Notes: generated from the sequence alone by a model not told the origin. A stretch of 64,000 nt of DNA from Hemiscyllium ocellatum (GCF_020745735.1 NC_083435.1:10943201-11007200), one strand, 5' to 3'. Shown: positions 2,831 to 64,000, counted from the first letter of the stretch. Program-made: numbers and translations.

Positions 2831-2984
2831 GAAATATGATGCTAACTCTTTCCAGATACTTTGTCCAATTTGTGTCTGTGCTGGAGATTTTAAAAATCTC
2901 TCTCGAGTTCTGCACTTTTACCTCCTCTTTTAATTCGGGTTTTCTAATTTCCCCTATCCCACTCTATTTAGCTTAAATTGTTAT

Positions 2985-5319: not shown

Positions 5320-5329
5320 TCATTTATCT

Positions 5330-13506: not shown

Positions 13507-13869
13507 CTGCAACATTCAGGGTCACTGTGATATCACTATGCTTGTCATTGGACACAACGAAGCACTGATACTGTCCCCTATCGGAGACCCTGACATCTTT
13601 GAGCCTGAGAGAGAGATTCCCCTGTGTCACTTCATCGAGAAACATCTCAGTCCGGCCATTGTGGGTTGAGGGTTGAAACGTTAGGTCATCTGCTCTCCTA
13701 GTGTACATGTGGACAGGTGAGTTGTAGCCATATTCCATGTTGATCCAGCGGACTTCCATATTCTCTGGGGCTACAGCCATGATCAGCACACAATCCAGGA
13801 TGACATCGCCCCCAACAACCCCTATGATGGGGTCCAATGGTCCTGTCACCTGTAAATCTGCCGCAGTTT
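13507..13869 (-). CDS. IgV exon of a butyrophilin/B7-like receptor (gene B1)
   Basis: Acceptor ctgttccag|AA and donor GCAG|gtcagt; 363 nt, phase 1-1; ETAADLQVTGPLDPIIGVVGGDVILDC..MEVRW..GRTEMF..GNLSLRLKDVRVSDRGQYQCFV..TLNVA has V-set Cys, Trp and D-x-G-x-Y-x-C. Confidence 0.9.
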
Positions 13870-14154
13870 CTGGAACAGCCAGCAGAGAGAGAGAGAGCTA
13901 GAGAATGAGATTCATCAGTCTTCACAAAAGTCATTACAGTTATATCATGAATAATAAGATAGAGAGGGGGAGGCAGACAGACAGAGAGGAAGAAACAGAG
14001 AGACAAAGGAACAAAGAGAGAGTAAGGGAAGGGGAGAGGGAAACGTGGAGAGGCACCAGAGCGAGAGATAAACAGACAGAGAACTAAGAAAATAGTTCAC
14101 ATTTCCCACAGTACTGACCATCTGGCAATGCAGCATTTCCCCAGTACCAACCTG

Positions 14155-26674: not shown

Positions 26675-27225
26675 TCAGTGCCCTTTAATCCCACAAATTG
26701 TCAGTGGGCCGGAGTTTTTCCCATCGTCATGCTCTCCCAGATAGAAGATGGGAAAGAGCCTCTCCGTGAAAGTGTGGGTGAAAGTGTGGAGATGGGACAT
26801 GGTGTCCGCATTGTAAAATGACACCTGTCCACCCTCATAGTCCAGGAAAATCCCGATCTTCCGGAGATTCACACTCGGGGAGAGGGGAATTTCAGAGGGG
26901 GAGGTGGCAGCAAAATAACCACATCCTGGTAACAGCCACACAGCCCAGACTCCGGTCTCCAGGCTTGGGTCATCCTCACATTTCCTCTCCACAGACTCTC
27001 GGGCCACACCCAGAAACCATTCCGTCTTCTCCCCCACCTCCACCTCCCAGTAATGTCTCCCTGATGTGAATCCCTCTGATCCCAGAACACATTCCCAGGG
27101 AACAAATCTCTCCGGGGAGTTAGGGAGCGGCTGCCGTTTGTCTCCGAGTCTCACACTGGTCCGGTCCTCAGACAGGATGAGCCGGGGATGCGCTGTGTTC
27201 GGATCCAGAGTCACAGGGGCTGGAG
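26675..27225 (-). CDS. T1 exon 6: PRY-SPRY (B30.2)
   Basis: ctctccccag|CT CCA GCC CCT GTG ACT CTG GAT CCG; [43 protein letters not shown]. Confidence 0.95.
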
Positions 27226-36200: not shown

Positions 36201-36639
36201 TCTCTCGCCCTCCAATACATCCCCCTTTTACCTTGTAGATTTCAACAGCCTCTTTAATCGGGATGAAACGGTGCTCTCTGTGTTCCGCAGTGACACAAAA
36301 CACACAGAGCAATTTCTTGTCAGTTCGGCAAAACAGCTTTAGATCTTCCTGATGTTCCTCACAGTGAGGTTTACTTTCCTTGTCTTTCGGATCCAGCTTT
36401 AATTTTCGAGCTTTCTCCGCCAGATTCGCTAAGGCCCGATTTACCCTGAGGTTTCTTTCCGGAAACTCCTCTCTACATTCCGGGCAGGAGTTTTTCTCCT
36501 TCTTTTCCCAACTCTGGGTGATACAGGAGCGGCAGAAGTTGTGCCCACATTCCAGTATAACCGGCTCGGTGAAGAAATCCAGACAAATGGCACAAACTGC
36601 CTCCTCGGTCCAACTCTCTCCCTGCTGTCTGGACGCCAT
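26675..36639 (-). CDS. TRIM E3 ligase T1 (RING, B-box2, coiled coil, PRY-SPRY/B30.2), 6 coding exons, 476 aa, TRIM39/TRIM35/A33-like class
   Basis: Exons 36232-36639 (408), 36044-36139 (96), 35717-35950 (234), 31772-31794 (23), 30566-30684 (119) and 26675-27225 (551), all GT-AG; sum 1431 nt = 477 codons, open throughout; sizes match the canonical class IV TRIM layout. Confidence 0.92.
27250..28010. repeat. Purine-rich (GA/GGA) low-complexity tract
   Basis: Plus strand almost entirely G/A; abuts the T1 exon 6 acceptor on the minus strand. Confidence 0.85.
28100..30190. mobile_element. Second-clade Penelope-like element (Neptune-type RT), rearranged, with a TG-rich tract at about 28600-28900
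   Basis: [39 protein letters not shown] core (29614-29900, +) with an internal 24-nt duplication at 29814-29861; terminal part with a GAAAGCT hammerhead-like motif at 28155-28190 (-). Confidence 0.75.
30566..30684 (-). CDS. T1 exon 5 (linker)
   Basis: tatattag|C AAG TTT..CAC CCA G|gtaaac; [39 protein letters not shown] with the typical GPLQY-x-x-W-x-x-M motif. Confidence 0.88.
31772..31794 (-). CDS. T1 exon 4 (23 nt)
   Basis: tttctttcag|GAGGAAGCTTGTCGGAAGAAAAG|gtaggg; EEACRKK; the canonical 23-nt TRIM exon supplying the required phase shift. Confidence 0.85.
32222..35620 (-). mobile_element. Near-complete CR1 ORF2 in T1 intron 3, with a SINE inserted at 33015-33330 (+)
   Basis: Endonuclease end [16 protein letters not shown] (34601-34885), [39 protein letters not shown] (33380-33895), C-terminus 32472-33026. 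Confidence 0.92.
35717..35950 (-). CDS. T1 exon 3 (coiled coil)
   Basis: tttggtag|GAACAG..CTGAAG|gtgaga; [44 protein letters not shown]. Confidence 0.92.
36044..36139 (-). CDS. T1 exon 2 (96 nt, coiled coil)
   Basis: gatgtcag|AATAAG..GTGAGG|gtgagc; [32 protein letters not shown]. Confidence 0.9.
36232..36639 (-). CDS. T1 exon 1 (RING + B-box2)
   Basis: [23 protein letters not shown] (C3HC4 RING) and CEEH..LFC..D..CVFC..EHREH (B-box2); TACAAG|gtaaaa. Confidence 0.95.
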
Positions 36640-36837
36640 GTTCACCCTCAGTACTTCCTGATTCAAATCGGTTTTACTGTGGATGATGACGCGCTGGTGA
36701 ACACATTCACTTCAACGATTCCCCGACGAATACACAGGTTCGAATACCTTAAGCTTGTCTGTCTTATTGATACTTTGACAGGAAGTAAAGAAATGTCAAT
36801 ATGTTGAAGAAGAAATAGGGCTGATCGTAGATTCACA

Positions 36838-37265: not shown

Positions 37266-39224
37266 TGTTGAACCCTGGCCGAGAGTGTGAAATTTCATGG
37301 AATGTAAACACTGGGCTGGGCCAGAGAGAGAGAGAGAGGAAGAGAAGGCGGAAATCTGCCCATGAAAGTTTCCAACCTGAAACGTCGACTCCTCTTCCCC
37401 ACTACTTTTTTCCAGCTCCACGCTTCATCCACTCTGACTCTCCAGCTTCTCCACGGAGATCTGCAGGGAGCGAGTTTTCCTTATGGGAGAACATCCTGGA
37501 TTTTAAGCTGCGACTGTTTCAAGTGCGTTGGAATTGAAGCTGAACTTTGGTGCTGGTTGGTAGCAAAACAGTAAATGCTGGCGATAGCAGCGGGTCAGAG
37601 ACACCAGGCTAACGTTTCGAGTCTGGGTGACTCTTCGTCAGATACTGGGGGGATGCTTTCTCTGACTGGAGAGTTTATAAATAGTGAGATCAGTAAGGCT
37701 CGAGGATTAAATCTGAAAACGGGAGAGGAGGAAATGAAGCGTGAAGATTATTGGGTGAACCTGAAGCTGTTTTCTGAAACTGAGCAAAAACTTTTTCCCG
37801 CTGGGAAAGGACTTCTCGAGTCCCGCGCCGCTTCCGCTGCGTTTCTCTAGGTTTCTCCCTCCACCGACTGAGTTTCTTCTGATCAACATCTGATCTTGCT
37901 TAGCAAACACCAGGCTTAGCGTTTCCTGCCGATCAATGAAGCTGTGGAGACCTCCCACAAGGACAATAAACAAAAGACTCGCTTGATCCAGTCGTCCGGG
38001 AGTTTCAAGAAACCCTTTTGTGATTGACTCTCCCGGTGGGAATCTTGGAAATCTTTCACAGAAAACAAACGGCTGTTTTGTAACTGCAAACAAAAGGAGG
38101 AAAGATTTCCGAAGTGAGGGTGAGTTCTCCCTGTGCTGATTTTCTGGGATCTCGGTTAGTTTTGTTCCCTTTATCGCGGGACATTAATGAGGTTTCACAT
38201 TTCATTCTGTAGGAACAGGCGAGCAGTCTGCAGACCCACATCACATCCGAGTTCACTAAAATGCACCAGATTCTCACTGAGAAAGAGCAGCGTTTACTCA
38301 GAGATCTCAGGGAAGAAGAGGAGAGGATTGTAGAACCAATGGAGAAAAACCTTCGAGAGATTCAGGAGAATTTAAATTCTGTTGAAGAGGAACTCTCAAA
38401 GTTGCAGAAACAGATGGAACAAATTTGGGGGAGGATAGTTCTGAAGGTGAGGGAAGGTATTGCTGGTGGGTTCAGTGTAAGGTCACTGTCGCTTAGGAAG
38501 AGGCGCAGTCCAGATACACAGGATGGAGCAGTTCAGTTATGAAGAGGTGCTGGATCGGCTCGGCGAGCGATCTTTAGGTCAGAAAGTCACAGGACATCAG
38601 GTTTATTTGAAATCACAAGCTTTCGAAGCGCTGCTCCTTTGTGACATGAAGTACAGCAGCGATCCGAAAGCTTGTGATTTTAACGAAACCTGTTGGACTA
38701 GAACCTGTTGTCATGTGACTTCTGACCTTGACCACCCCAGCCCAACACTGGCACCTCCATGTTACGTCTTCTTTAGAGCAGAAAAGAATGAGACCGGATC
38801 TGATTAAAGCGTACACGATGAAAAGGGGTCTGGGCAGGATGGAGAGAGAGAAGCTGTTGCCATTATTCGAAGCGTCATCATCGAAGGGAGGGACAATGTT
38901 AAGAGGAATAGGAGATTTATGTGGGATTTAGGGAAAATGTTTTTCGTTTAGGGCGATGGGAGTCTGGAGTGGATTGTTTGCGATGGTTTAAGGTGGAAAC
39001 CTTTTTTTTAAAAAGTCCTTGGATGAGCTCTTGAACTGCAGTAACATTCACGGCTAAGGGTCAAATGCTAAAATGTGAAATGAATGTAGATAGGTCAGTG
39101 CAGGTTCGATGGGCCGAATGGGCCGTGGTTTCAGATCGTACCGGACACAGGAGCAGGTGAGTCTTGTTTGCGATTAGATTAGGTTCCCTCCGGTGTGGAA
39201 ACAGGCCATTTGGCTCAACAAGTC

Positions 39225-43878: not shown

Positions 43879-44109
<231 letters not shown>

Positions 44110-44690
44110 TGAAGAGTGGGAGTGGTCCGAGAGTCTTTCAGGAGGGGATAAGTTTCTGGAATGTGGAGCTGATTCCTGGAGATAGTTATGTTGCCCCCAC
44201 ATGGAATCCCCTCTCCCCGAGTGTGAATCCCCGGAAGATCGGGGTTTTCCTGGACTACGAGGGTGGACAGGTGTCATTTTACAATGTGGACACCATGTCC
44301 CATCTCCACACTTTCACCCACACTTTCATTGAGAGGCTCTTTCCCATCTTCAGTCCGGGAGGGAATGACGGCGGGAAAAACTCCGCCCCGCTGACAATCT
44401 GCGGGATTAAAGGGCACTGACAGATCCATCCCATAATTTCACCCCGTCCCCCTGCCTCCTGCCAGCTGTAAACTGATGGGGGTCGGTCTCAGTCTGGGGG
44501 AGAGAAGGAGGGGGAGAGAAGAAACAAATAGAAGCTCAATTGTAGAGAGGGACTGACTGGGTAGAATGAGCTGTGAGCTGCAGGAACCCGGGGACCTTCC
44601 TGCCTGTAATGTTGCTCCACAGGCGGGAGGTGGCGCTACATGACATATCTGGGCAGGGCCGCGGCCGTCCTGTTCTCAGTAAATTGAACA

Positions 44691-47600: not shown

Positions 47601-48087
47601 CACACAGGGCACAGCACACAGGACACAGCACACAGGACACAGAGAACAGATTACAAAGGTTACAACCAAAAACGTGACTTCTTCCAACCTCCTTCCTAAC
47701 TAATTTAGATTGCAGTGTGTGAGATTTCTTGTCTTTCAATGAGAATTCCTTGGCTTGCAATTGGCGTGGTGTTTCTTTCTGGGTCATGTTTCCTCAATGC
47801 AACTTAGAAAATCGTCAGATGATGAGCTCTTTGTGGATGGCTTCACTTCAAAAATTGGGAGTCTAATGTCCAAACATCAAAGAATTTGACCAGGCCTTTG
47901 TCCTTAGAACCTGGCCATATTAGATTCCTGGTCAATATGCAGCCTGACCTTGGTCATTGCTTTCCCATCAACTTGAAAGGCACTTTAAAATTTTATACAC
48001 TTCCAGAGCACTTGTTAGCAAGTGACTCACTGGTAAAATTAATGTGTCAGTCTTAACCATGTTAGTGTTTAATGAGACATCAGTTCA

Positions 48088-48605
48088 CTAGTTCTTGACT
48101 GGACAGACAGTTAAGGGCGACTTATCCCAGCCAGGCCAAAAGAATGGGTAGACCTTTTCTGAAAAGTTGACTTGAAATGTGTAAAGGTGGAACATGTCAT
48201 CGGCATTGTAAAAAGACACCCTTCCTGCCTCCATCTCCAGGAACACCCCGATCGTTCCAGGACTGGTCGTTACTGTGACTTTGGAGCGTTGCGCATCACT
48301 TATTCCATATGGCTCACCATCCTTCCCAATTGTCCAGAACCCAGCATCGGCGCACAGGTCAGGCATGCCCTTGCGCTGCACTGAGCCTTTGGTGACGCCT
48401 ACATCCCAGTAGGACTTGTCAGCCACCTTCACCTCCCAGTAGTGGGACCCCTCCGCGAAACCATCCATGCCCAGCACATAAGGGACAGAGTCAAACCGCT
48501 CCGGATTGTCTGGGACATCCTGTGCATCTCCGGCTTGCACACTCAGCCTGTCTGGAGACACCGTCAGACACGCGTTGGCTGTTTCAGGGTCCATCTTTAC
48601 ATGGG
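48088..48605 (-). CDS. Terminal PRY-SPRY (B30.2) exon of butyrophilin-like gene B2
   Basis: ttttctttcctag|CC CAT GTA AAG ATG GAC CCT; AHVKMDPETANACL..PERFD..GSHYWEVKV..WDVGV..IGVFLEMEAGRVSFYN..YPFFWPG..CPVKN*; 518 nt, phase 1, open. Confidence 0.93.
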
Positions 48606-49422
48606 CTAGGAAAGAAAACAAGATGAGAAATGGAAGCAAGAACAGACTGCACAGCCCCTTAAACTTGCTCCATTGATCAATACGATCATAGCATCCCCAT
48701 AGTGTGGAAAGAGGCCATTTGACCCATCATGTATCCACTGATCCTCTCAAAAGCATCCCACCCATAAACAGACTTTGATCCCATCTGCATAATTCTGCAT
48801 ACAGCATGACCAATCCACCCAGCCTGCACATCTCTGGACTGTGGCAGGAAACTGGAGCACCCAATAGGAAACCCAAACAACTGTGGGAAGAACACACAAA
48901 TGCCATACATCACCGACCTGTCTCCCAAGTTACTTCACTATCCACCAAACCGCAATCCCCTTGTCTCTGAAATAGCCTAGAGATCAGTCATTCAGCTCAA
49001 GAGAAATTAGGCATGGGCACCAAATGCCAGCCTCAACAGCAATGCCCACCTCCCATGTAAGCATAAAGAGAAAACACAATATCCTGACAAAAGCTCCATC
49101 AATTGCACCCTTGAATGTATTCAATGATTGTAGCCTAAAGATCAGGAGATGCCCAGAGTTCTGAACATCAATAAATCTCAGAGCAAAAACATTTCTCCTC
49201 ATCTCAATCCAAAATGTCTGACCCCTCACTACTTTTTCAAGTCAGGCAGCTGTTAGCACTGCGGACTCACAGCACCAAGACCCAGGCTCGATTTCAGCTT
49301 GGATGACTGTCTGTGTGGAGTTTGCATGTTCTCTCTGTATCCATGTGGATTTCCACTGAGTGCGCCAGTTTCCTCTCAGTCCAAAGTTGTGCAGGTTAGA
49401 TGGATTAGCTAAAACTTGCTCT

Positions 49423-50570
49423 CAAGTTTTGAGAAGATTTGTAGCTCAGGTTGAGGTTCTGGAGATAGGTTTACTCACTGAGCTGGAAGGTTCATTTTCA
49501 GACATTTTGTCACCATACTATGTAACACCATCAGTGAGCCTCCAGATGAAGCACTGGTGGTGTAGCCCGCTTTCTACTTATGTGTTTGGGTTTCCTTGGT
49601 TTGGTGATGTCACTTCCTATGATGTCGTCATTTTCTGTTCTTTTTCTCAGGGGGTGCTAAATGAGATTCAAGTCAACGTGTTTGTTGATAAAGTTCCAGT
49701 TAGAATGCCAGGCTTCTAGGAGTTCTCGTGCGTGTCTCTGTCTGGCTTGTCATGGATGGATCTGTTATCCCAGTCGAAGTGGTGTCTTTCCTCATCTGTA
49801 TGTAAGGATACTAGTGAGATGGGTCATGTCTTTTTGTGGTATCCTGTTCAGGTATCCTGTATTCAATGAACACAGGCTGCTGATTTTTCAGCTACAAACC
49901 CAAAGAAGCAGTCAAAACGTGTCCAGAAACCTGAGCCACTCTCTCCTACATCAAAGACATCTTGGCAATGATTGGCAGACTAATTCAGACCCCTCGGCTT
50001 CATGGTAGCCCACAAACCCACCAGCACACTAAAACAGCAACTAATGAACTTAAAAGACCCTATACAGACAACAAGCAAAACAAATATCATTGAAAAAATA
50101 CCTTGCAAGAACTGTAACAAATACTACATTGGACAAAAAGGCAGAAAACTAGCCACCAGGATACATGATCATTAACTAGCCACAAAAAGATGTGACCCAC
50201 TCTCACTTAGTATCCTTACATACAGATGAGGAAGGACACCACTTCAATTGGCATAACACATCCATCCTAGAACAAGCCAGACAGAGACATGCACAAGAAT
50301 TCCTAGAAGCATGGCATTCCAACCAGATCTCTATCAACAAACACATTGACATGGATCCCATTTACCAAGCCCCTGATAAAAAGAAAAGGAAATTACATCA
50401 CCACAGGTAATGAAATAACCAAACCTAGGAAACCTAAACACAAAGAGAAAGTGGGCTTCACCACCAGTGCTTCATCCAGAGGCTCACTGATTATGTTACC
50501 TATGATGGTGATGAAACATCTGAAAATGAACCTTCTAGCTCAGCGAGCAAATCGACATCCAAAAACCTGC
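49423..50570. mobile_element. Penelope-like element with an inverted terminal portion (49423-49840 minus, about 49880-50570 plus)
   Basis: Plus part encodes decayed KIPCKNCNKYYIGQ and FNWHNTSILEQARQRHAQEFLEAWHS; the minus part is the reverse complement of the same 3' end. Confidence 0.85.
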
Positions 50571-50589
50571 TCTATTATGTCTAGGGATA

Positions 50590-51300
50590 TGCAGGATAGG
50601 TGGAGTTTAAAAAAACGTATTTGTAAGATGTGAGCATTGCTGGCTGGGAAACATTTATTACCCATCCCAAGTTGCCTCTAAGAATGTGAAAGTGGAAAGC
50701 CTTCTTGAACTTCTGCTGTAGGTAGATCCACAATGGAGGACATTCTGGGATTTTGACCAAGCGACATGGCAATACAGGGCGACCCCATATCCATGGGTCT
50801 GGTTACCATGGTTTCATGCAGTTCAAACATATAAAAGGGAACCTTCCACAACGAGGGACAAGGAGTCTGCCAGGAAGGTACATTTCTCTTTTAAATGAAT
50901 GGCTCCATTTCTACCAGTGGTTTCAGCCTTCTGCAATAAATCCTGGAATGGATCCCTACCGGCTACGAGGGGACTACTGTATATTTCCAAGTCAGAATAG
51001 AGAGTGGCTCAGAGGGAAGCTTGATTGTTGTGTTGCGCCCATGGATCTGCTATCTTGTCCTTCTAGATAGTTGTAGGCTTAGAAGGTGCTGTCTTAGGAT
51101 TTTTTGGTGAATTTCTGCAGTGCACCTTGTAGATAGTACACACTGCTGGTACGGAGGTAGAGAAAGTAGATGATTGTGGGTGTAGTGCCAGTGCAGCAGG
51201 GCTGCTGTGTCCTGGATAGTGTCAAGTTTCTTGAGTATTGTTGGAGTTACGCCCATCCAGGGCAAGGGCAGAGTATTCCACCCTACTCCTGACTTGTAGC
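50590..51300 (-). mobile_element. CR1/L2-superfamily LINE 3' fragment
   Basis: WMGVTPTILKKLDTIQD peptide; same family as 14155-14900. Confidence 0.65.
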
Positions 51301-52833
51301 TTTATGGGCAGGCTTTAGGTATGGCATTAGCCATGGTAAATGTGGGGTTACCGGGATTGGGCAATGGGCCAGATCCAGATGGGATGCTCTTTGAAGGGTC
51401 ACTGCAGGCTCGGAGCAGAATTGGCTTTTTCCGTAGTGTAGGCATTAGACTCGCTAGCCAGGGAACCAGCCCCACAGTGTTTACTCTGCTAAGCCTTCTC
51501 AGAAATATATATATTTCAAAGAGGTTCCTTCTCATTCTTCAGATCTTTAGAGGTTACCAGCTCAAACTTCAATCAAGTTTTCAGGCGAGGAGCTTTTAAA
51601 ATTGACAAGACGTGTCAGTCAGAAAGCTGACCATTGAGAGGAAACTCTGACTCCCTCAGTAACATCCTTGCTTCTGACTCACAGTGCAGTGGGCTGGAGA
51701 TGCATTGAAAGATTTGACCAGTCATTTCCAGGCTGACCTCACCCTGTGTAGTACTGCTGGAATGCTGCACTGTTAAAGAGAGACATTAAAATCAAGGCCC
51801 CCTTGCTACCACACCCCCTGCTCACTCACTCACTCTCAACAAAACTTCCAAACACTAATGTATTTGCCTCATTCACTGTGTTGAAATGAGTCAACATAAC
51901 TGCCAACATTTAGGTCTTTGGTCATGAGAATTTTCCCAAGGGTGTGAAGAATGTTCTGCAAATATATCCCATTCTATCACTGACTGATTTTGCATAACAC
52001 GAATTGGTCAAAAGATTGCTAGGCCTGTTGCAAACAGTTCAAAATAAATTTTCTACATCCATTGTGAAGGACATTTTCACCATCAAAAAGAACATATAAA
52101 AACCACGTATTGAAAGCATTTCTATTGACAGCTCTTTCACCATTGCCAGCTTTATTTACCACCCTCTATTTGCAAGCCTCAGAAAAATGTATCCATCAAA
52201 GGATGTGATTCTGTTATTGGAAATAATTTGGTAAATAATTCAGACAAGTTACACCAGAAACCAATTTAAAGATCATCAGCTGGGCACATCCAACCAGACG
52301 CATTTAAACATGCTGGAAGTTACACATATAAATACACGAGATCCTATTGCACGTCAGTAACAAGAACTTGTACATATGTTTCACCTTTGGTCATAAATCC
52401 AGGTTCACAGAGGCAACCAATCCTCTGCTGTATTTCCAGGCAACTCCCTGACCAATCAGAATCCACCAGCCTCACCTCTACACTAAAGATGACCCAACCA
52501 ATTTGCATCTTCCTGTATAAACGCCTGTCGTGATTCTGTTGCTGCACCCAAAGTCCAGAAAAGGGGAGATCAGCTCCTTCCGGGTTAGTTTGAAAAAGAA
52601 AATTGAGGAATAAAAATGTGATGTCAGAAAAAAGTGCCAATAGAGCTGTCAAACTGTCTTAAACTCCTGAGGAGGTCTTATGGTACAATGGGTCACTTCA
52701 CAACTTGTATCTGTGGAATTTGTGGAACACAGCCTAGGGAATTGATAAGTAATCTTGTAAATCCTTCTGATGGTCCACAAGATGATGGTTAGGGCAGTCT
52801 CGGGTGAGGTCTTACCTACATTGACAATCTTAC

Positions 52834-52860
52834 CTGCATAGCTCCGTATCCTGTTCCACT
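52834..52860 (-). CDS. B2 micro-exon k (27 nt) EWNRIRSYA
   Basis: acttttgcag|AGTGGAACAGGATACGGAGCTATGCAG|gtaaga; matches the W-x-x-x-x-x-x-A pre-B30.2 exon typical of butyrophilins. Confidence 0.88.
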
Positions 52861-53124
52861 CTGCAAAAGTAACACAGAAATAGTAACTGAAGATAACTAA
52901 TAAACTGTAGTACTCTCAAACACGACAGCAGTCAAAGTACATTGTGGCTTTCAGTACACCAAGGATCTGACATTGGCCCACAGTGGGTAGCGAAAGGCAA
53001 AGACACACACACACACACCAGATTAAATGAAATAAAAGTAGCAATTAACATAATTTTGATCATCACACTCCCTTGTTCCATTTATTTCAATGTTACTCTG
53101 GGCTAACATAAAAAAATATACAAA

Positions 53125-54040
53125 CGTTGATAGATTCTTAGAGTTATAGAGGTATACAGCACAGAACAAACTCTTCAATGCAACTCATCCATACTGAGCA
53201 GAAATCCTAAATTAATCTCTTCCCATTTGCCAGCATTTGGCATAAATCCCTCTAAACCCTTCCTATTCACATATCCATCCAGGTTTCTTTTAAATGCTGT
53301 AACTGTACCAGCCTCCACCATTTCCCCTAGCAACTCATTCCATACACACACCCCGTCCTCTGCAATGAAAACGTTGCCCCTTAGGTCCCTTTTAAATCTT
53401 ACTGAAAAGTTATGCCTTCTAGTTTTGGACTCCCCCATCCTGGAGAAAAGACCTTGGTTATTCACCCTATCCCCACCCTTCATGATTTTATAAACCTGTT
53501 ATGTCACCACTCAGCTCCCGATGTGCCTGAGAAAACAGCCGCAGCCTATTCAGCCTCTCCCTATAGCTCAGCCCCTCCAACCCTGGCAATATCCTTCCGA
53601 TAGGAGGGAGATCAAAATTGCATACAATATTTCAAAAGTAGCCTAACTAATGTCCTGTACAACTGCAACATGACCTCCCAAACCCAATACTCAATGCAGT
53701 GACAAAAAAAAGCATACCAAATGTTTTTTTCACTATCCTATCTATCTGCGATTCCACTTTCAAGGAACTACAAACCTGCAACATAAGGTCTCTGTTCAGC
53801 AACACTCCCCAGGGACTGTTCAGTGTATATGTTCTGCCCTAATTTGTCTTTCCAAAATTTGACACCTCCCATTTAATCGAAATTAAAACTCAAGAACCAT
53901 TGTCACTCCTCGGTATAATAGCCCATCTAATCCCAGTGCTATTGTATTCTGAGGTAACGTTCTTCGCTGTCCACAAGACAACCAATTTTGGTGTTATCTG
54001 TAAACATACTAACTATAATCTCCTGTATTCATATCCAAAT
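53125..54040 (-). mobile_element. CR1 LINE 3' fragment in a B2 intron
   Basis: GDRVNNQGLFSRMGESKTR..VWNELLGEMVEAGTVTAFKR. Confidence 0.85.
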
Positions 54041-54099
54041 CATTTGTACAAATGACAACTGAAGATTCTTTTCAATGTGCATTCATACAGGTATCATAC

Positions 54100-54126
54100 C
54101 TGACTGGACCAGAGGTCTCCATTGCT
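54100..54126 (-). CDS. B2 micro-exon j (27 nt) EQWRPLVQS
   Basis: tttcatttcag|AGCAATGGAGACCTCTGGTCCAGTCAG|gtatga. Confidence 0.82.
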
Positions 54127-54982
54127 CTGAAATGAAACAGTGAAGAGAAAATGTGTGAATAAAACCCACTCAATACACTTAACACTATCAACAAATTTTG
54201 CTTTCACGTCAGAGTTTTCTTAAGGAATAAAGCCGAATCCATTTTAAGAATAGCAGCAATAACTAACGCATTATTAACAAAATCTAGCCAGGGTGTGAAG
54301 TCCTGATCTATTGCCAGCATTTCGGATCAACAAATACCTGCGCCAGCAGTTCCCATTCTATTTTCTACGTCAACAGTCAGACTGTGATTGCAACATCTGG
54401 CCATCTAGTGGCACTACAGAGCAAGTTACTGAAGCTCCCTGCTCAACTCCCACCAATATTTTCATTTTTGGTAAAGAACACGCAAGGGTATATTTTCTGA
54501 GAAGCACTGGAGGATTAGCCTCCTGCAATAGAACTGCCCGAGTTTCCATCTTAAACGAAATTTGAAGGGACGAAAATTGGACCCATTGCCCAGCAACACC
54601 TTATAAATTCCCAATCCATGTTCATTAACTGGGAAGTGATCAATTCAAAGTGAATCCAGACTTTGACTATGATTTATTTCACACTCTATAATTTTAGTTA
54701 AAAATGAGGAGGCCCAGGTCAATTTCCACAAAGTTGCCGTTTGCAGACATGATGATCTCTAGATGCTCAATCTCTCATGAGCGCCTGCAGCTCGGTCTAG
54801 AAATCTGTTTCAGGAAACAAGTTATTTGTAACACCAGGAAGGAGACTAGTCAATCCCAGATTATTACATCCAACTGAGGGAAAGTATGGTGCAGACTTGA
54901 ACCTGTTTTTTTTTAATGCTCAATTACTAACTGTAGCTGGGCTGAAGATGAAGGCACATTTTTTTACTGACAGCTAACTCAC

Positions 54983-55009
54983 CAAATTCAGTGCGTAGCT
55001 TCTGATATT
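54983..55009 (-). CDS. B2 micro-exon i (27 nt) EYQKLRTEF
   Basis: ccttattcacag|AATATCAGAAGCTACGCACTGAATTTG|gtgagt. Confidence 0.85.
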
Positions 55010-55379
55010 CTGTGAATAAGGAATGATCAGAAATGGTTAAAGCAAAGAACTGATACCTTCAAATGAAATGAACGATTTCATAAACAATTGACTATACGTA
55101 CAAATTTCAATATCAGTAGTTATTTCCCAAAGCTGATTTCAAACAAAAAAAAACGAACTGACCTGTGTTCATATACTGCCTTCTAATAGGGCACCAATGA
55201 TTTACAAGGAGATGGTACAAAACTAATGCAATAGATTTGAAACATTAACTCAGTTTTACCTCTTTCAACTGATGCTCCCTGGACTGCTGAGTTTCTTTGT
55301 TTTAGATCACTAACCAATCATTTTGTGAAATGAAGGAGAGATAGATGTAGAGATTGGGGGTGGGGTGGGGGCAGGAGAT

Positions 55380-55427
55380 AGAGAGACATAGACATAGATA
55401 TATAGACATAGACATAGACAGAGATAG

Positions 55428-55472
<45 letters not shown>

Positions 55473-55480
55473 TAGAGAGA
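55380..55480. repeat. GATA/GAGAGATA microsatellite within a purine-rich tract (about 55340-55950)
   Basis: Runs of gacataga and gagagagata. Confidence 0.9.
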
Positions 55481-56082
55481 TAGCAAAAGAGGCAGACAGA
55501 ATGAGACAGACAGTCAGGCAGGCAGACAGAGTAAAGAAAGAATACAGAAGGAGTTTTGAGAAGATGGAATACAGGAAGACGAAGAGGGAATGAAGAAAAT
55601 GGATAGGGCAGGAAGCAAAAGGGCAGCAGGTGTGACGAGGTGCAGAAGAAAGAATGAACTGGGGAGAAAACAAGCAGGAAGAGGAGAGGGATAGGAAGAC
55701 ACAAGGTGGAAAAGAGAGACAGAGATGCAGAGACATTAGCAGAAGAGAAGGTGAGATGAGGAAGGAGAGCAGAAGAGAATGAATGAAAAAGGGAAAGAAA
55801 GGAAGAACATGGGGAGCATTTGGGGTGGGGGTGTCAGAGAGAGAGACAGACAGAAAGATTCTGAGGAGCAGAAGGTGAGAATGGGAGAGGAAAGCGAGAG
55901 AAAATATGAAAAGCGAATGAGGCGGAGAGACTGAGAATGAAAATTAGCAGAGAGAGAAGCATTTGCTGTCTGCTTCCGGGTTTTCAATCTGTTCCCTGTC
56001 AGAGCATGTACCATCCCAGTCCCCTCCCTGCTCCAGTGTCGAGGTGAACTTCACTTCTTCAGGCCCACACACAGTTACATAC

Positions 56083-56109
56083 CTGCTTTCTCTGTCTCCC
56101 TCTCTTCAT
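56083..56109 (-). CDS. B2 micro-exon h (27 nt) DEERETEKA
   Basis: ctgtcttacag|ATGAAGAGAGGGAGACAGAGAAAGCAG|gtatgt. Confidence 0.82.
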
Positions 56110-56249
56110 CTGTAAGACAGAATCAAGAACTTAGCAATAGCATGGAACAATGACCCGAGTGAGACATTATACAATATTGATAAAATGGAAAATCAAGGCT
56201 AAAATGTGTGCTCCTCGACACTGGTAATGTGACTGAGTCCCAACACAGA

Positions 56250-56806
56250 CTGAGAAACAGGCCCCCGGCCCTGAGCGCAGCCTGAGAAACAGGCCCCCGG
56301 CCCTGAGCGCAGCCTGAGAAACAGGCCCCCGGCCCTGAGCGCAGCCTGAGAAACAGGCCCCCGGCCCTGAGCGCAGCCTGAGAAACAGGCCCCCGGCCCT
56401 GAGCGCAGCCTGAGAAACAGGCCCCCGGCCCTGAGCGCAGCCTGAGAAACAGGCCCCCGGCCCTGAGCGCAGCCTGAGAAACAGGCCCCCGGCCCTGAGC
56501 GCAGCCTGAGAAACAGGCCCCCGGCCCTGAGCGCAGACTGAGAAACAGGCCCCCAGCCTGAGCACAGCCTGAGAAACAGGCCCCCAGCCTGAGCGCAGAC
56601 TGAGAAACAGGTACCAGCTCGAGCACAGAGTGAGAAACAGACTTCAGCCCAAGCACAGAAAGAGGCCCCCCGCGTGAGGAGAGACTGAGAAACAGCCCCC
56701 AGACTGAGTACAGATGGAGAAACAGGCCCCAGGCTGAGTACAGATGGAGAAACAGGCCCCAGACTGAGTACAGATGGAGAAACCGGCCCCAGACTGAGCA
56801 CAGACT
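56250..56806. repeat. GC-rich minisatellite, 32-bp unit CTGAGAAACAGGCCCCCGGCCCTGAGCGCAGC
   Basis: Nine essentially identical units starting at 56250, 56282 and so on to 56506, then about 8 diverged 30-31-bp units. Confidence 0.95.
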
Positions 56807-56884
56807 GTGGAAGAGCTGCAGTGAGTCTGCCTTTGGTTTGAATTGGCCATCGACAGAAATAAAAAATCTGATTAAATTACTTAC

Positions 56885-56911
56885 CAACTTGTTTCTTAAA
56901 TTGTTCGTGTT
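56885..56911 (-). CDS. B2 micro-exon g (27 nt) EHEQFKKQV
   Basis: tgtatattacag|AACACGAACAATTTAAGAAACAAGTTG|gtaagt. Confidence 0.85.
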
Positions 56912-57049
56912 CTGTAATATACAAGGGAGAGGCATTAATCACAAATTTGAATTTCACACAATGTCTCAACCTTCTTTTTCTGCTATCCTTTGTTATCCTC
57001 TGTGCTCGATATTGACCTCTGTGCTCTGAGCTTAGTCTCCATTGGCCAG

Positions 57050-58310
57050 ACTCACCCGGTCTGGGAGGAGACTGCAGTAGCCCATGCAAGCATCTACCAC
57101 CACAAACTGGAGCAGTGGATAGTGCAACAGCAATCCAATCGACGGTTCTCTGTGCCAGCTGTACTTACACAGCAAACCCCCAGCTACAGCAGGAATCATC
57201 TACCCGAATACCAGGGCAAGCATTGGGTCAGGCCAACATTGGCATCATCTGGGGAGTGAGGAGTTCATGCTATCGGAAGGATGTTGTGAAACCTGAAAGG
57301 GTTGAGAAAAAAAATTTACAGTGATGTTGCCAGGGTTTGAGAATTTGAGCTATAGGGAGAGGCTGAATAGGCTGGGTCTGTTTTCCCTGGAGGTTTATAA
57401 AATCATGTGGGGCATGGAGAGGATAAATAGACAAGATCATTTAAACCTTAAGATTTAAAAGGCACCCAAGGGGAAATGTTTTCACGCAGAGGGTGGTGAG
57501 TGCATGGAATGAGCCATCAGAGGACATGAAGGAGGCTGGTACAATTACAATATTTAAAACAAATCTGGATGGGTATATGATTAGGAAAGGTTTAAAGGGA
57601 TATGGGCTAAATGCTGGCAAATGGGACTTGATTATTTTACGATATCTGGTTGGCATGGACGAGTTGGATTGAAGAGTCTGTTTCCATGCTGTACATCTCT
57701 GTCACTCTATGCCCTTTCCCTCAGGGTAGGGACAAAACCCAGAAGACATAAAGCAGCTAGAACACGAACAGATGTTCACTAACATGGGGAACCAACTCTC
57801 CAGGAAGGAATGGTCAATATCTTGGTCAAAGTGACCACTGTCCAGGAATGGGAACTCTCAGAATTACACAATGTGTGGATTATTTAAATGTCTTTGAACT
57901 CAGAAAATAAGTTGATAGGGTTGTTAAGAAGGCGTATGGTGTGTTGGCTCTCATTAGCTGGGGGTTTTAGTTTAAGGGCTGCAAGGTTATGCTGCAGCTT
58001 TACAGAGCCCTGGTTAGATCACACTTGGAATATTGTGTTCAGTTTTGGTCACCTCATTGTAGGAAGAATGTGGAAGATTTAGAGAAGGGGCAGAGGAGAT
58101 TTACCAGGAGGCTGCCTTGACTGGAGGGCATGTCTTTTGAAGAAATGTTGAGGGAGCTAAGGGTTTTCTCATGGGAGCGAGGAAGGGTGAGAGGCGATTT
58201 GATAGAGGTGTACAAGATGATGACAGGCAGAGACAGAGTGAATAGTCAGAGACTTTTTATTCCTCGGACAGAAATGGCTATCACAAGGGGGCATAATTTT
58301 AAGATGTTTG
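57050..58310 (+). mobile_element. Two CR1 3' fragments (about 57050-57710 and 57900-58310)
   Basis: RKDVVKPERVEKK and RGRVRGDLIEVYKMMTGRDRV peptides. Confidence 0.8.
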
Positions 58311-58471
58311 GAGGGAAAAAAAGTGAGGGATGGGAAGGCCTGTTTGATTGGTTGTGAGGAATTGGAGACACAAAGTCATGTGACCAAACCTCCAGAAGTG
58401 CATCAAACCAGAGTTGATAACACATCTGCTGTCCCTCTCCTCCAGCAGAAATTCCTCAGCTCCCTGCATAC

Positions 58472-58498
58472 CTGCAATAATGGTGGCCATTTTCTTTT
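58472..58498 (-). CDS. B2 micro-exon f (27 nt) EKKMATIIA
   Basis: ccttttttacag|AAAAGAAAATGGCCACCATTATTGCAG|gtatgc. Confidence 0.82.
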
Positions 58499-59139
58499 CT
58501 GTAAAAAAGGAAAAGAAAGAGATGTTAAAGCATAGAACCTTCTAGAAGACGCAACCCAGTACAAGGCTTCTGGAGTGAATGTGGTGAATACAATCCAGAT
58601 CTACCCTCGCCCTGCACAGGTTAGCGATGAGATTACCCAGTCCACCAGGTTAGGTACAGAATAAAAACTATCCTTCTACCCTGTCCCATTAAATACTTCC
58701 AGTATAACACAGATTAGATATAGAGTGAAGCTCCCTCAAAACCATCCTATCAAACACTCCTGGGTCAGGGAAAATACAGGGTTAGAATCAGATTGAAGCT
58801 CTGTCTATACCACCCCCATCAAAAATTCCCAGGAGGTATAGCACAGTTAGAAACAATATAAATCTTCTTGTTCTTTACTGTTCCATCAAATACTCTCAGG
58901 AGATGCAGATATGGACTAGATATAGCACAAAGGTGCCTCTGACTGTTGGCATCAAACACTTTGGTATATCCAGTAAAGCCAATCCCATTAAGCTGAAAGC
59001 ACCTGGAATAAATTTGGGGTAATTCACCAAATTGGTTGTGAGAAACTAAAGGCAATGTGATGCTGGTGAAGAAAGATATGCTGAACATGAGCTGCGAACC
59101 CAAACCCAGAGAGAAAATACTTTGGAAATGATCGCTTAC

Positions 59140-59166
59140 CGTGCAACTGCTGGAGTTCTTCACATT
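59140..59166 (-). CDS. B2 micro-exon e (27 nt) ECEELQQLH
   Basis: tttttctctacag|AATGTGAAGAACTCCAGCAGTTGCACG|gtaagc. Confidence 0.85.
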
Positions 59167-60249
59167 CTGTAGAGAAAAATAGATAAGAGCGAAATTTGTC
59201 ATATGCGGAACAAAGCAAAGCAATCTAAAATCAGATCATTGGTTGTAGCAGAAATGTCACTGAAAAATCCCTGAAATCATTTCTCAAATCAGAGATATTT
59301 TTAAGTTTAGACAAAAAAAACTTTTTAAAAATAATTGATATGTGAGTAATTCTTGCATAGCATTGCTCACCTATCAGATAATACACTGCATATATATTAC
59401 ACAACAACTTACATTTAGAGAGAGAGTCTGTTTTTCTTCAACTACATCTCAAAATATTTTCAAATGTAATATTTGAAGCATCAGCTACACAGTGAGGTAT
59501 TAGGTCAGATGACTAAAGACTTTATCAATGAGGGAGGTTTTCATGGGAACGTGTTTAAAGAAGGTAATTGAGATTTGGTAGGGGTGTAGTGTTTGGAACT
59601 GAAGCAACTGAAACCGTCCTCTCCAATGAAGGAACAATTATAATTTTTGGTATGGAGAGGCTAGAATTAAAGGACCACAGGAATGTCAGAGTTACAGAGC
59701 AGAGAAGGCAAGGACATGAGGGGATTGGGTGGGAAATTAAGAATGGAGACATTTTTCAACTAGGAGCCAACGTAGGTCTGCAAACATCGGAGTGGAACAG
59801 GGGTTAGTGAAGACACAGGCAGCAGAGTGCTGGATGGCCCCAAATTTACAGGCTAGACTGTGAAAGCCCAGTCAGAGGGTGTTGAATGAGATGAAACTGT
59901 GTTGTCAGGAATGCATTTTTCCTCTGATATATTGGAGGTTTGCATTCCTCACAGAATGTCAAAGGCTAGAAACGACTAGAAAATACTGAAATATGGGAGA
60001 CATTATTTGACTATTTGTAGAATTGTGAAGAGAATAGATTATGAAATCAATGACTGATTCACAAACACATGCCCTGATAAAAATAAAATGTGTAACTCAC
60101 TCAATCTCAGGGAGCAGGAGGAGTGTGTGTTCATGGGAAGATTAAATCTTCCTTATGAACAGAAGTCTGCGATTAACTCCAGGTATTCTGGTCAGGTTTT
60201 ATGAGCCTTTTTATCAAAGTTGCAAAGACAACAAAATCACAGGAATCTT

Positions 60250-60555
60250 TTCTTTCCTACAGTGTGGGAACTGGCCCTTCAGCCCAACAAATCCATACCG
60301 ACCCTCTGAAGAGTAACACACCCAGACCCATTACCCTTGACTAATGCACCTAACCGACACATCCCTGAACACTACGGGCAATTTAGTAACAGCCAATTCA
60401 CCTAACCCGCATATCTTTGGATTGTGGGAGGTATCCCACACAGACACAGGGAGAATGTGTAAAGTCCACACAGACAGTTGCCCGAGGCTGGAATCAAACT
60501 CAGGTCCCTAGTGCTGTCAGGCAGCAGTGCTGTCCACTGGGCCACCCGTGCCACC
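60250..60555 (-). mobile_element. tRNA-derived V-SINE (HE1-like)
   Basis: Aligns to 5779-6098 with small deletions. Confidence 0.85.
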
Positions 60556-61062
60556 CTCTGCAGAGTAATTTTGCTGTTCACTCTCTGATTAGACTCTACC
60601 CTCATAAACCCAGTGCCTCTTAAAACTGATGCTAAGTCTCTCCTTCTCGCATTTGCTGGCAGTTTCGATCAGTGAGCATTTTGGAAAGTAGTGAACACAC
60701 CAGACTTGCTGCAATATTAATAGTGATTTAAAGAGGAGTGCATTTCTAGATATCCACAGATTCCCAGCTCTGGGATTTGTTCCCATCAGCTCAAGAAATT
60801 CCCAGAAAGTCAGCTTCTCAAGGATCCCTGTTCTGAGATCAATGAACATAACCAGCTCATAGTGAAGAAGTGACTGAATTAACTCATCCACTTCACATCA
60901 CGTAGTGATAGGAGAGTATTACAATTTAATGTCCATTTTGATGGAGCAGTTTGGGTGATACGGCCATTAACAGTTATTTACAAACCTGTTAACTTGTCTT
61001 CAGATGGGCTGATGCTGAAATGAAACATTACAATCCAAACAGCGTGTGTTCGCATAACTCAC

Positions 61063-61089
61063 CTTTTTTCCTTGCTTGCTTCGCGTTCT
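61063..61089 (-). CDS. B2 micro-exon d (27 nt) ENAKQARKK
   Basis: ttccatttcag|AGAACGCGAAGCAAGCAAGGAAAAAAG|gtgagt. Confidence 0.83.
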
Positions 61090-61393
61090 CTGAAATGGAA
61101 TAAACAAACAACGATGTGATCCTGAGTCGACAGTAACCAGGTCAATGTCTGTCCTTCTCTTGCTCCCAGAATGGTAGAGGTTCAAACCCACTCCTTCATT
61201 CAGCACCTGCTTTATTGCAAATCCCCTGATGGGTCTGCCATGAGTTCTACGTTGTTCCAAAATGGTTTCTCTCCCACTAGAATCTGGTCCCAGTCAGAGT
61301 TACCATCCCGCTTTCCCATCGCTCTCCCACTGTCTTGCTCTGGGCATAATCCACCCACACCTCCCTTCTATCCAATTGATTTCATGTTCTTAC

Positions 61394-61420
61394 CTATCTC
61401 CTGGTGCAGTCTTTGATGCT
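61394..61420 (-). CDS. B2 micro-exon c (27 nt) EHQRLHQEI
   Basis: ttttttttaaacag|AGCATCAAAGACTGCACCAGGAGATAG|gtaaga. Confidence 0.85.
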   Translation of the reverse strand, partial: SIKDCTRR

Positions 61421-61568
61421 CTGTTTAAAAAAAAGTGAAAACACCTCAGTGAGATGACAATAAAGTGACCATGCAATATCTCTGTTTGAAATTGACTCCA
61501 GTCTTGAAACTGCACAGAAACACAATCAGGGTCTGAATGGAACCATCCCCAGCATCCTGATTACTAAC

Positions 61569-61595
61569 CTTCATGCACCTTTCTCTTCTCTTGCT
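61569..61595 (-). CDS. B2 micro-exon b (27 nt) EQEKRKVHE
   Basis: taaaatttcag|AGCAAGAGAAGAGAAAGGTGCATGAAG|gttagt. Confidence 0.8.
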
Positions 61596-61717
61596 CTGAA
61601 ATTTTAAAAATAATCCATGTAAGAAATGGTGAAAAATACAGAGGATTCATTTAGATTTAATTAACAGTGACCATGTGTCCTCCAGTGTTTTATAGAAACA
61701 GAACTGTCTATTTAATG

Positions 61718-62364
61718 TGTTATGGACCAGACCAAACCTCCTCAAACATCTAAAAAGATAACACAGAGCTGAACTTTTATTTAAGGGCAAGTGTAAGGCC
61801 CTTCTTTGTAAATGTGATTCAATAGGTCAAACTAACAGGCTTTGAGAAAAACACTATTCCAACACCACAATAAAATGCAAACTCAAAACAAAGAATTGGC
61901 ACAACTTTATCTCCCTTGAAGACCTAATAAAATACTATTTAACTACTACACATCAACTGTTCCAATATCGCAGCATCCCATGAACCCACTCTTGGTGAAG
62001 GCAAATTCAGCAGAACAATTTTTCCAGACTTGCTACCTCCTCCAGTCCAGAAGAAGGAGAACCAACAGAATGAATCCAGCAGCAAAGAGAGAGAGAGAAT
62101 GTAAGCTTTTAGCAGCAACTAAGAGAGAGCTGTATCTTGCAGCTTCACTCCAAAACCCCAACTTCAACAACTGAAAGCAAAACTAAAACTCTGGGTCGTT
62201 GAGAGCCTGACTCCATGTGCTCGGACTTCTTCAGCTTAATTTTTTTAAAGAAGCAGCTATTCACTCTGCTGTCCATGCAGCAGACATCTCGGCTCCAGGT
62301 TTACAATTCCTCTCTTCAAGAACCAGGACAGAACAAATCCCTCTCAAAGGCACATCTCATCACA
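61718..62364. mobile_element. Probable solo LTR
   Basis: TGTTATG..CATCACA termini (imperfect terminal inverted repeat); flanks AATG and AAGG (3 of 4 match to a 4-bp TSD). Confidence 0.5.
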
Positions 62365-62394
62365 AAGGAAGCATTACAGTATAGACTGATGGGC

Positions 62395-62715
62395 TGAAAA
62401 GCCTCTCCTGTATTGTATTCTTCTACATAGCCAACCTGTGAACAGCAAGATCCCACAAACAGTAACCAGGACAACGACTAGATCATTTGATTCCTCCAAT
62501 GTTAATCGCATGATAAATATTGGCCAGGACACTGGGGAGCCCTCATCTGTTCTTCTTAGAGATACAGCATGTGCTTCCATTCATTCAAAGGCCACGCATT
62601 GAAGCCTAATCTAAATGTCAGCTCCTCTGACAATGCAGCATTCCCTCAGCTCTGTGGAGTGTCAACCTGGAGTTTCGTCCCCAAATCCTGGATAGGAACT
62701 TGAAGCCAAAACCTC
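62395..62715 (-). mobile_element. Deu-domain SINE remnant
   Basis: ATATTGGCCAGGACACTGGGGAG and GCAGCATTCCCTCAG..GGAGTGTCAACCTGG match the reverse complement of the Deu core as recalled. Confidence 0.55.
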
Positions 62716-63308
62716 ATCATAGAACCACAATTCATTCAAGACATAAAACTCATCTTTGTAATGGAGAAAAACTGACTATTCCATCTTGCAGAACATATCG
62801 ACAGTCTCGTCCTCCTTTCGCTTCTCAGTGCCAACCCACCCACAGTTCTGAAAACCATTCTTCCCGTTCAGGTCTGCAATGAGGAGAAATTTCCTCAATC
62901 TATGGGCTGTGAATCTTGTGAATTCTTTGCCTCATCAATCAAAAATGCAGGAAAATAAAAATGTAGGCTCTTTATGTGAGATATTGCAGAGGAGTCAATC
63001 CTCCAAGATCAGACTGAACAGTGGAACAGCTCAACCTGCTCCAGCTGACCCCTGCTCTGGCTTCTCATTTTGTTCTCCACATCATTTTCGATAAAATGCA
63101 TTGAGATATTCTCAGAATGTGAAAGGTGTTACAGAAATGCAAATATTTCTTACTATTCATGCCATGAAGACCTTCAAACCCAAACTATTTGTTAACCGTT
63201 ACATCACCAGACCTAGAATTAGAGTTCTTCTCTCAAATGCTGTGACCATACTTCCACATCATTGGGTTTCCCATTCCCTTCACATTTAAGTTTCAAACAG
63301 CAACTTAC

Positions 63309-63335
63309 CCATGATATCCAGCAGCCTTTGATGTT
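63309..63335 (-). CDS. B2 micro-exon a (27 nt) xHQRLLDIM; upstream exons lie beyond the window
   Basis: gactcattacag|AACATCAAAGGCTGCTGGATATCATGG|gtaagt. Confidence 0.85.
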
Positions 63336-63964: not shown

Positions 63965-64000
63965 GGGCGGCATGGTGGCACAGTGGTTAGCACTGCTGCC
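63965..64000 (+). mobile_element. 5' end of an HE1-like SINE
   Basis: GGGCGGCATGGTGGCACAGTGGTTAGCACTGCTGCC. Confidence 0.8.

Follow-up and report, generated by a model that had tools for sequence, protein, structure and literature searches.

Gene structure and micro-exon array

Here, we analyzed a stretch of 64,000 nucleotides (nt) from the genome of the epaulette shark Hemiscyllium ocellatum (GCF_020745735.1, NC_083435.1:10943201-11007200; hereafter the window), whose minus strand carries, between positions 48088 and 63335, eleven micro-exons of exactly 27 nt followed by a terminal exon that encodes a B30.2 (PRY-SPRY) domain. This part of the window is the 3' two-thirds of an annotated gene of the butyrophilin (BTN) family, whose product consists of an IgV domain, an IgC domain, a transmembrane (TM) segment, a long stalk and the B30.2 domain. 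The features of the gene are listed below in the order of transcription. Positions above 64,000 are window-equivalent positions, and each micro-exon extends from its lower coordinate s to s+26.

71.2 kb, minus strand: leader exon (splice map)
70.5-70.9 kb, minus strand: IgV exon (splice map)
67.5-67.8 kb, minus strand: IgC exon (splice map)
~66.2 kb, minus strand: TM exon (splice map)
65875-65901, minus strand: micro-exon 1 of 12, outside the window (splice map)
63309-63335, minus strand: micro-exon 2 of 12, the first inside the window (CAG acceptor, GTAAGT donor; positions 10911-10937 of locus L001)
61569-61595, minus strand: micro-exon 3 of 12 (splice signals, strict pattern, splice map)
61394-61420, minus strand: micro-exon 4 of 12, with 17 of 27 bases as in micro-exon 2 (splice signals, strict pattern, splice map)
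61063-61089, minus strand: micro-exon 5 of 12 (splice signals, strict pattern, splice map)
59140-59166, minus strand: micro-exon 6 of 12 (splice signals, strict pattern, splice map)
58472-58498, minus strand: micro-exon 7 of 12 (splice signals, strict pattern, splice map)
56885-56911, minus strand: micro-exon 8 of 12, without counterpart in Mobula and Hemitrygon (splice signals, splice map, alignment)
56083-56109, minus strand: micro-exon 9 of 12, without counterpart in Mobula and Hemitrygon (splice signals, splice map, alignment)
54983-55009, minus strand: micro-exon 10 of 12, with a Y-x-K-L motif (splice signals, splice map, alignment)
54100-54126, minus strand: micro-exon 11 of 12, the Q-W-R/K-P-L-V unit (splice signals, splice map, alignment)
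52834-52860, minus strand: micro-exon 12 of 12, the E-W-x-R unit, aligned with the final juxtamembrane segment of human BTN3A1 (splice signals, splice map, alignment)
48088-48605, minus strand: terminal coding exon, PRY-SPRY (B30.2), 515 nt of coding sequence (CDS) plus TAG (Pfam, acceptor, stop codon)
47700-48087, minus strand: probable 3' untranslated region (word coverage in putative RNA runs)

The eleven segments within the window (52834-63335) are each preceded by a pyrimidine tract and CAG, begin with A, end with G and are followed by GT(A/G/T)(A/T)G. A strict pattern built on these signals, CAGA-N25-GGTDWG, has 12 matches in the window, 11 of which are the exons, all on the minus strand and within 10.5 kb, whereas dinucleotide shuffles gave 1.01 +/- 0.99 matches and never more than 3 (100 shuffles), so that a chance origin of the array can be rejected. 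On the other hand, a loose scan for AG-N-GT with 15-45 nt between the signals returned approximately 10 matches per length per strand, and the simple motif alone is thus uninformative. No further cryptic 27-nt exons were accepted in the introns, where the remaining candidates contained stops or had weak donors. A recent tandem duplication of the micro-exons was rejected as well, since any two of them mostly share 7-15 of 27 bases, a range that is exceeded by exons 2 and 4 alone.

Joined in phase 1, the eleven exons read without a stop into the terminal exon, and any pairwise join of exons within the window regenerates GAA, GAG or GAT, i.e., a Glu or Asp codon. The terminal exon has its acceptor at 48606/48605, CDS from 48603 to 48091 and a TAG stop codon at 48090-48088; its Pfam scores were 2e-16 for PRY and 8e-22 for SPRY. 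Two repeats were also seen in this region: a 32-bp tandem repeat of approximately 18 copies (56244-56807), which lies in the intron between micro-exons 8 and 9, and a GA-rich microsatellite at 55375-55480.

Identification as a member of the butyrophilin family

A HMMER search with the B30.2 exon returned full-length proteins with the order IgV-IgC-TM-stalk-B30.2 and matching last stalk units, and a second protein search with one of these as query led to XP_060706870.1 of H. ocellatum (labelled P0155 here). This protein of 553 amino acids (aa) and XP_060706871.1 share one identical sequence, and both are named "butyrophilin subfamily 1 member A1-like". The joined translation of the micro-exons and the terminal exon is 100% identical to residues 284-553, the C-terminal 270 residues. 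An exact protein-to-locus splice map on L001 (GCA_020745735.1; window coordinate = 74246 minus L001 coordinate) revealed 17 coding exons of 40, 375 (IgV), 285 (IgC), 120 (TM), twelve times 27, and 515 nt, and every intron of the gene is in phase 1.

In the first-pass annotation of the window, which was made from the DNA alone, at least 11 phase-1 exons of 27 nt, the peptide that they encode and a nine-residue-unit stalk of 99 or more residues were described, and a butyrophilin-like type I receptor was proposed whose immunoglobulin and TM parts would lie beyond the window. All eleven exons proved to be exactly as listed, the peptide was correct residue for residue, and extension of the analysis past position 64000 recovered one more 27-nt exon, followed by the TM, IgC, IgV and leader exons, which brings the array to twelve and the distance from TM to B30.2 to 116-117 residues. 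However, the array is not hidden as had been supposed, because the gene and all its micro-exons are present in the RefSeq models named above; nor is the architecture new, as the same exon layout is annotated in four other elasmobranchs and a long stalk occurs in further chondrichthyan models.

The structural features of BTN-family genes were then compared with those of the shark gene. IgV and IgC are each encoded by their own phase-1 exon upstream of the window, with Pfam matches to V-set and C2-set_3. Immediately ahead of the stalk, the 120-nt exon encodes more than 17 hydrophobic residues in a row, which form the single predicted TM segment. The juxtamembrane part comes from very short, symmetric exons, and the B30.2 domain lies on one terminal exon and is nearest to the B30.2 domains of BTNs: by both sequence and fold, the best matches in PDB were BTN3A1, BTN3A3 and BTN2A1, ahead of TRIM21. 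XP_060706870.1 has no RING or B-box match, and the RING/B-box exon found in the window belongs to a neighboring gene, so a TRIM-type gene was rejected. A chicken BG-type gene was also rejected, on account of the IgC and B30.2 domains and of the exon length of 27 nt. Thus, every structural feature of the BTN family that was examined is found in the shark gene, whereas it lacks those of BG and TRIM genes. The gene is a real, annotated member of the butyrophilin family, and its micro-exon stalk is unusually long and regular. The names given by NCBI to the shark orthologues are inconsistent (1A1-, 2A1-, 2A2-, 3A1- and 3A3-like), which argues against a simple one-to-one assignment to a mammalian subfamily.

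Conservation and copy number in cartilaginous fishes

Exon layouts were mapped in Hemiscyllium, Mustelus, Leucoraja, Mobula and Hemitrygon, and Chiloscyllium, Heterodontus and the chimaera Callorhinchus were compared at the protein level; for the alignment of stalks, units were counted back from the B30.2 domain in nines. The BTN-like models of these chondrichthyans are orthologues with shared stalk motifs. Twelve 27-nt micro-exons were found in Mustelus asterias and the little skate (Leucoraja), and ten in Mobula hypostoma and Hemitrygon akajei; the IgC, TM and B30.2 exons of these four species are again of 285, 120 and 515 nt. The distance from TM to B30.2 given above for Hemiscyllium holds for Chiloscyllium, Heterodontus, Mustelus, Leucoraja and Callorhinchus as well, and only in the two myliobatiform rays (Mobula and Hemitrygon) is it 98-100 residues. 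These rays lack exactly 18 residues, which in the alignment are two adjacent units that match micro-exons 8 and 9 of the window. Since the skate keeps both units, the loss of the pair happened within batoids. The cross-species comparison proposed at first pass recovered the same array in other elasmobranchs, and the unit number looks fixed at twelve from chimaera to sharks, with one pair missing in the two myliobatiform rays. Given that the chimaera-shark split dates back roughly 400 million years by our own estimate, the 12-unit length has been kept over that span.

Orthology is clear in all species aligned for the first unit and for the last three, and among the orthologues the Q-W-R/K-P-L-V and E-W-x-R units hardly vary. 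The former and the E-W unit are also kept in a short-stalk paralogue (P0158). Another paralogue, P0083 of Scyliorhinus canicula (locus L009), has seven 27-nt phase-1 exons and a TM exon of 129 nt, and retains the E-W unit only. The 27-nt unit is common to both mapped chondrichthyan BTN-like lineages, and the number of units differs between paralogues.

In addition, the Y-x-K-L motif of micro-exon 10 was observed in every chondrichthyan orthologue aligned, the chimaera included. It could be a YxxPhi sorting motif or SH2-binding motif, although both its Y and its L belong to the seam (see below). Three long models, P0156 (S. canicula, 746 aa), P0201 (Chiloscyllium plagiosum, 854 aa) and P0187 (Amblyraja, 1063 aa), look like fusions of neighboring BTN-like genes. 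In P0156, a second IgC is joined directly to the sixth stalk unit, and the TM segment and the first five units are absent; this layout could be either a model error or a soluble in-frame isoform.

Periodicity and predicted fold of the stalk

The stalk is composed of 22% E+D, 20% K+R, 11% Q and 24% large hydrophobic residues (E, K, R and Q together account for ~54%), and 12 opposite-charge i/i+4 pairs are present in its 108 residues. In five of the six 12-unit orthologues the hydrophobic spectrum peaks at 3.57-3.61 residues; in the sixth, Callorhinchus, the largest peak is at 2.0 and the power at 3.6 is nearly equal and significant. Shuffling gave p <=0.002 at 3.6 in all six and weak values at 3.5 (p 0.04-0.8). 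Among the 10-unit rays, Mobula peaks at 3.61, and Hemitrygon has its largest peak at 2.26 with almost equal power at 3.6; p at 3.6 was <=0.0005 in both (0.0005 in Hemitrygon), and the power at 3.5 was significant too (p 0.0075-0.0095), yet below that at 3.6. A canonical heptad coiled coil (3.5 residues, 7/2) was therefore rejected, the periodicity of the stalk being 3.60 residues (18/5).

Written in a frame of 18 residues, the stalk has a hydrophobic residue at position 5 of every second exon in 94% of cases and at position 9 in 78%. With five hydrophobic residues per 18-residue exon pair, i.e., one every 3.6 residues, the seam would be straight and not that of a heptad supercoil. Its coherence at 100 degrees per residue over the 108-residue array was 0.53, compared with 0.15 +/- 0.08 for the null and a maximum of 0.47 in 5000 shuffles. 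In silico deletion of any internal pair of adjacent exons left the coherence at 0.47-0.54, whereas deletion of one central exon lowered it to 0.09-0.38. Loss of a single exon breaks the seam because nine residues make 2.5 helical turns, which is a rotation of 180 degrees.

AlphaFold2, run with an alignment of 12 sequences, modelled cytoplasmic residues 25-124 as one uninterrupted helix followed by a confident B30.2 fold. Block means of the predicted local distance difference test score were 80-96 along the helix, and at least 88 from residue 31. The closest solved relative of the B30.2 domain by sequence was the intracellular domain of human BTN3A1 (5hm7, E=1e-44), on which the model superposed with a TM-score of 0.91 (target length) at 43% identity.

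Expression and splicing

In the little skate, four independent RNA-seq contigs (L005-L008, from four SRA runs) carry an open reading frame of 1659 nt that equals the spliced genomic CDS, with only 6-10 single-base mismatches. These contigs are proof from an orthologue, independent of gene prediction, that a twelve-exon array of this kind is joined in the predicted way. In the epaulette shark itself, two small runs that we guess to be RNA from the genome's own sample (X1 and X2) contained 1.00 and 0.98 of the sampled words from 47700-48605, but only 0.28 and 0.04 of the words from the last intron. A protein search with the B30.2 exon alone returned no transcript-derived partial protein of this species, and only models from Stegostoma and Pristiophorus.

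Exon-skipping isoforms were found neither among the RefSeq accessions nor among the full-length skate RNA-seq contigs examined. One identical full-length sequence is shared by four Chiloscyllium RefSeq accessions, and all seven aligned 553-aa skate proteins derived from Logan transcripts keep 12 units. Skate sequences of 527 aa, which cluster at 90% with those of 553 aa, were considered as a skipping isoform and rejected, as they represent a different paralogue.

Neighboring genes

Several other features were found in the window, as listed below.

13502-13897, minus strand: IgV exon with 67% identity to the IgV domain in the product of the BTN-like gene (E=8e-59)
26678-27199 and 36163-36711, minus strand: PRY-SPRY exon and RING/B-box exon of a TRIM-type gene (Pfam)
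38213-38539 and 44028-44417, plus strand: coiled-coil exon and SPRY exon of a TRIM-type gene (Pfam)

A tandem BTN-like paralogue probably lies downstream on that strand, with the IgV exon as its first large exon; positions 1-13500 showed no IgC exon. The two TRIM-type genes lie head to head and adjoin the BTN-like gene, and such a mixed BTN/TRIM neighborhood of B30.2 genes recalls the human extended class I region of the major histocompatibility complex (MHC). Fragments resembling the reverse transcriptase of long interspersed nuclear elements (LINEs) were also recognised, by eye only, in long open stretches (1539-1985, 15947-16441, 32475-34969 on the minus strand, and others).

Models of the stalk

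It is most likely that the twelve exons together encode one long amphipathic alpha-helix of approximately 100 residues (~15 nm), which would reach from the membrane to the B30.2 domain. By analogy with the juxtamembrane coiled coils of BTN3A1 and BTN2A1, its hydrophobic seam would most likely zip two chains into a parallel dimer, and such a dimer would keep the ligand-sensing B30.2 domains a set distance away from the membrane and in a set orientation to it. The stalk would then act as both spacer and transmission rod. Taken as a whole, we regard as probable the reading in which all twelve 27-nt exons of this annotated BTN gene are included in its transcripts and together encode a helical spacer, most likely paired in parallel.

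Several observations weigh against this reading. The seven-exon paralogue P0083 has a stalk without the 3.6-residue periodicity, which means that a 27-nt array need not have the seam. The AlphaFold2 model of the stalk is that of a monomer, and its pairing is reasoned from the seam and from the mammalian relatives. Junction use in H. ocellatum itself is deduced from the RefSeq model together with RNA of the orthologue. Moreover, assembled contigs drop rare isoforms, and exon skipping at a low level would be compatible with the data. Finally, E, R, K and Q are abundant in the helix and large hydrophobic residues make up only 24% of it, a composition that would fit a stable single alpha-helix spacer as well.

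The last point leads to a different view of the stalk, in which an unpaired helix of the ER/K type serves as a rigid spacer and the 27-nt exons merely encode a ruler. Its charge composition and i/i+4 pairs would suit such a helix, and the lone helix is continuous and confidently predicted by AlphaFold2. However, the 3.6-periodic hydrophobic seam is kept in eight species, the hydrophobic residues at positions 5 and 9 of every second exon would be needless for a helix exposed to solvent, and the mammalian relatives form juxtamembrane coiled coils. We therefore consider an unpaired helix unlikely.

Another hypothesis, put forward at first pass, was that splicing or exon copy number tunes the stalk: single 27-nt exons would be skipped in frame, and stalk length, partner choice and signalling reach would vary accordingly. 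All twelve exons are indeed symmetric and in phase 1, the reading frame survives the loss of any single one, and any pairwise join in the window regenerates an acidic codon. In-frame skipping of juxtamembrane 'heptad' exons has been reported for mammalian BTN3A transcripts (PMC6790196), and the tails of chicken BG vary through alternative splicing of 21-nt exons (PMC4046983). The number of exons also varies, being 12, 10 or 7 across lineages and paralogues. On the other hand, the terminal G that contributes to the acidic codon is splice-donor consensus anyway, and skipping one exon rotates the seam by 180 degrees and its coherence collapses. The sole natural deletion among the orthologues is that of an exon pair, and the 12-unit length is kept from chimaera to sharks. 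Both Hemiscyllium and four Chiloscyllium RefSeq accessions have identical full-length sequences within each genus, and 12 units are kept in 7/7 of the aligned Logan sequences and 4/4 of the mapped skate contigs. Thus, the variation in exon number is real, but no skipping isoform appeared in RefSeq or in the skate contigs, and tuning by splicing appears quite improbable.

TRIM coiled coils are antiparallel, and the location of the shark gene among TRIM genes, with TRIM exons within the window, might suggest the same arrangement for its stalk, just as a seam of 3.6 residues is the signature of a surface-bound amphipathic helix, which could lie along the inner membrane leaflet or a lipid droplet; but the stalk has no similarity to TRIM coiled coils in protein and PDB searches, two membrane-anchored N-termini favor parallel pairing, and the hydrophobic face is narrow (~5 per 18) with acidic and basic flanks, unlike lipid-binding helices, so that either arrangement seems very unlikely indeed, even if BTN1A1 acts at lipid droplets in milk-fat secretion (PMC8664049).

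A more far-reaching proposal, which we advance tentatively and consider possible rather than probable, combines the architecture of the stalk with the history of the family. The exon pair would be the quantum of an 18-residue ruler in a straight, non-supercoiled dimer, whose 12-unit length (~15 nm) would have been held since the chimaera-shark split and could be altered only by pairs, since the hydrophobic seam stays in register only when exons are lost or gained two at a time. The ancestral butyrophilin would have possessed both a BG-like long micro-exon tail and a B30.2 domain, of which birds would have kept the tail and mammals the B30.2 domain.

Comparison with mammalian butyrophilins and chicken BG

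Mammalian BTN3A1, BTN3A3, BTN2A1 and BTN2A2 (human; 5hm7, 8zjx, 8za9) share with the shark protein the order IgV-IgC-TM-juxtamembrane helix-B30.2. Their B30.2 domains are 43-45% identical to that of the shark, with a TM-score of 0.91 by target length, and entries for the full-length BTN2A1-BTN3A1 complex solved by cryo-electron microscopy were among the structural and sequence matches. In the alignment with human BTN3A1, its last juxtamembrane segment pairs with the last shark micro-exon. From the same alignment, the shark protein appears to lack the basic residues that we take to be the phosphoantigen-binding ones of BTN3A1. The juxtamembrane part of BTN3A is encoded by 'several very short exons' (PMC6790196), and a coiled-coil juxtamembrane dimer is the model that one group favors for BTN3A1 (PMC7348870). 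However, the mammalian genes have few short exons and a stalk of ~60-70 residues, compared with twelve uniform 27-nt exons and ~117 residues in the shark, and the 18/5 periodicity of the shark stalk differs from the heptad of the mammalian proteins.

Chicken BG, encoded in the MHC B-G region, is likewise a type I protein of the butyrophilin family with a long cytoplasmic tail built from many tiny symmetric exons. Its tail, a predicted alpha-helical coiled coil, is encoded by 13-36 exons of 21 or 24 nt whose number varies between genes, without B30.2 and with much splicing variation (PMC4046983). Unlike the shark protein, BG has a single IgV, no IgC and no B30.2, and its heptad exons are of 21 (sometimes 24) nt. 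While exon number and splicing are highly variable in BG, the shark array consists of 12 conserved units of 27 nt and is followed by B30.2. The shark gene departs from the forms described so far in its uniform 27-nt unit, in the combination of twelve copies with B30.2 and in its 18/5 periodicity. We found no paper on micro-exons in shark or ray butyrophilins, although most subscription journals were outside the search and the absence of such a report is thus unproven.

The practical value of these results is modest, and public databases already contain the gene models. Their main point of interest is an unusually long stalk whose conserved organisation is by exon pairs with 18/5 periodicity. 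The shark gene also links the extremes of the family, namely the short-stalk mammalian BTNs that have B30.2 and the long-tail chicken BG that lacks it. Butyrophilins signal inside-out: the B30.2 domain senses a cytoplasmic ligand, and the juxtamembrane helix relays this to the ectodomain that is seen by gamma-delta T cells. This relative from cartilaginous fishes hints at what may be the ancestral transmission rod, twice as long, built from twelve uniform exons, with a straight 18/5 seam and a conserved length.

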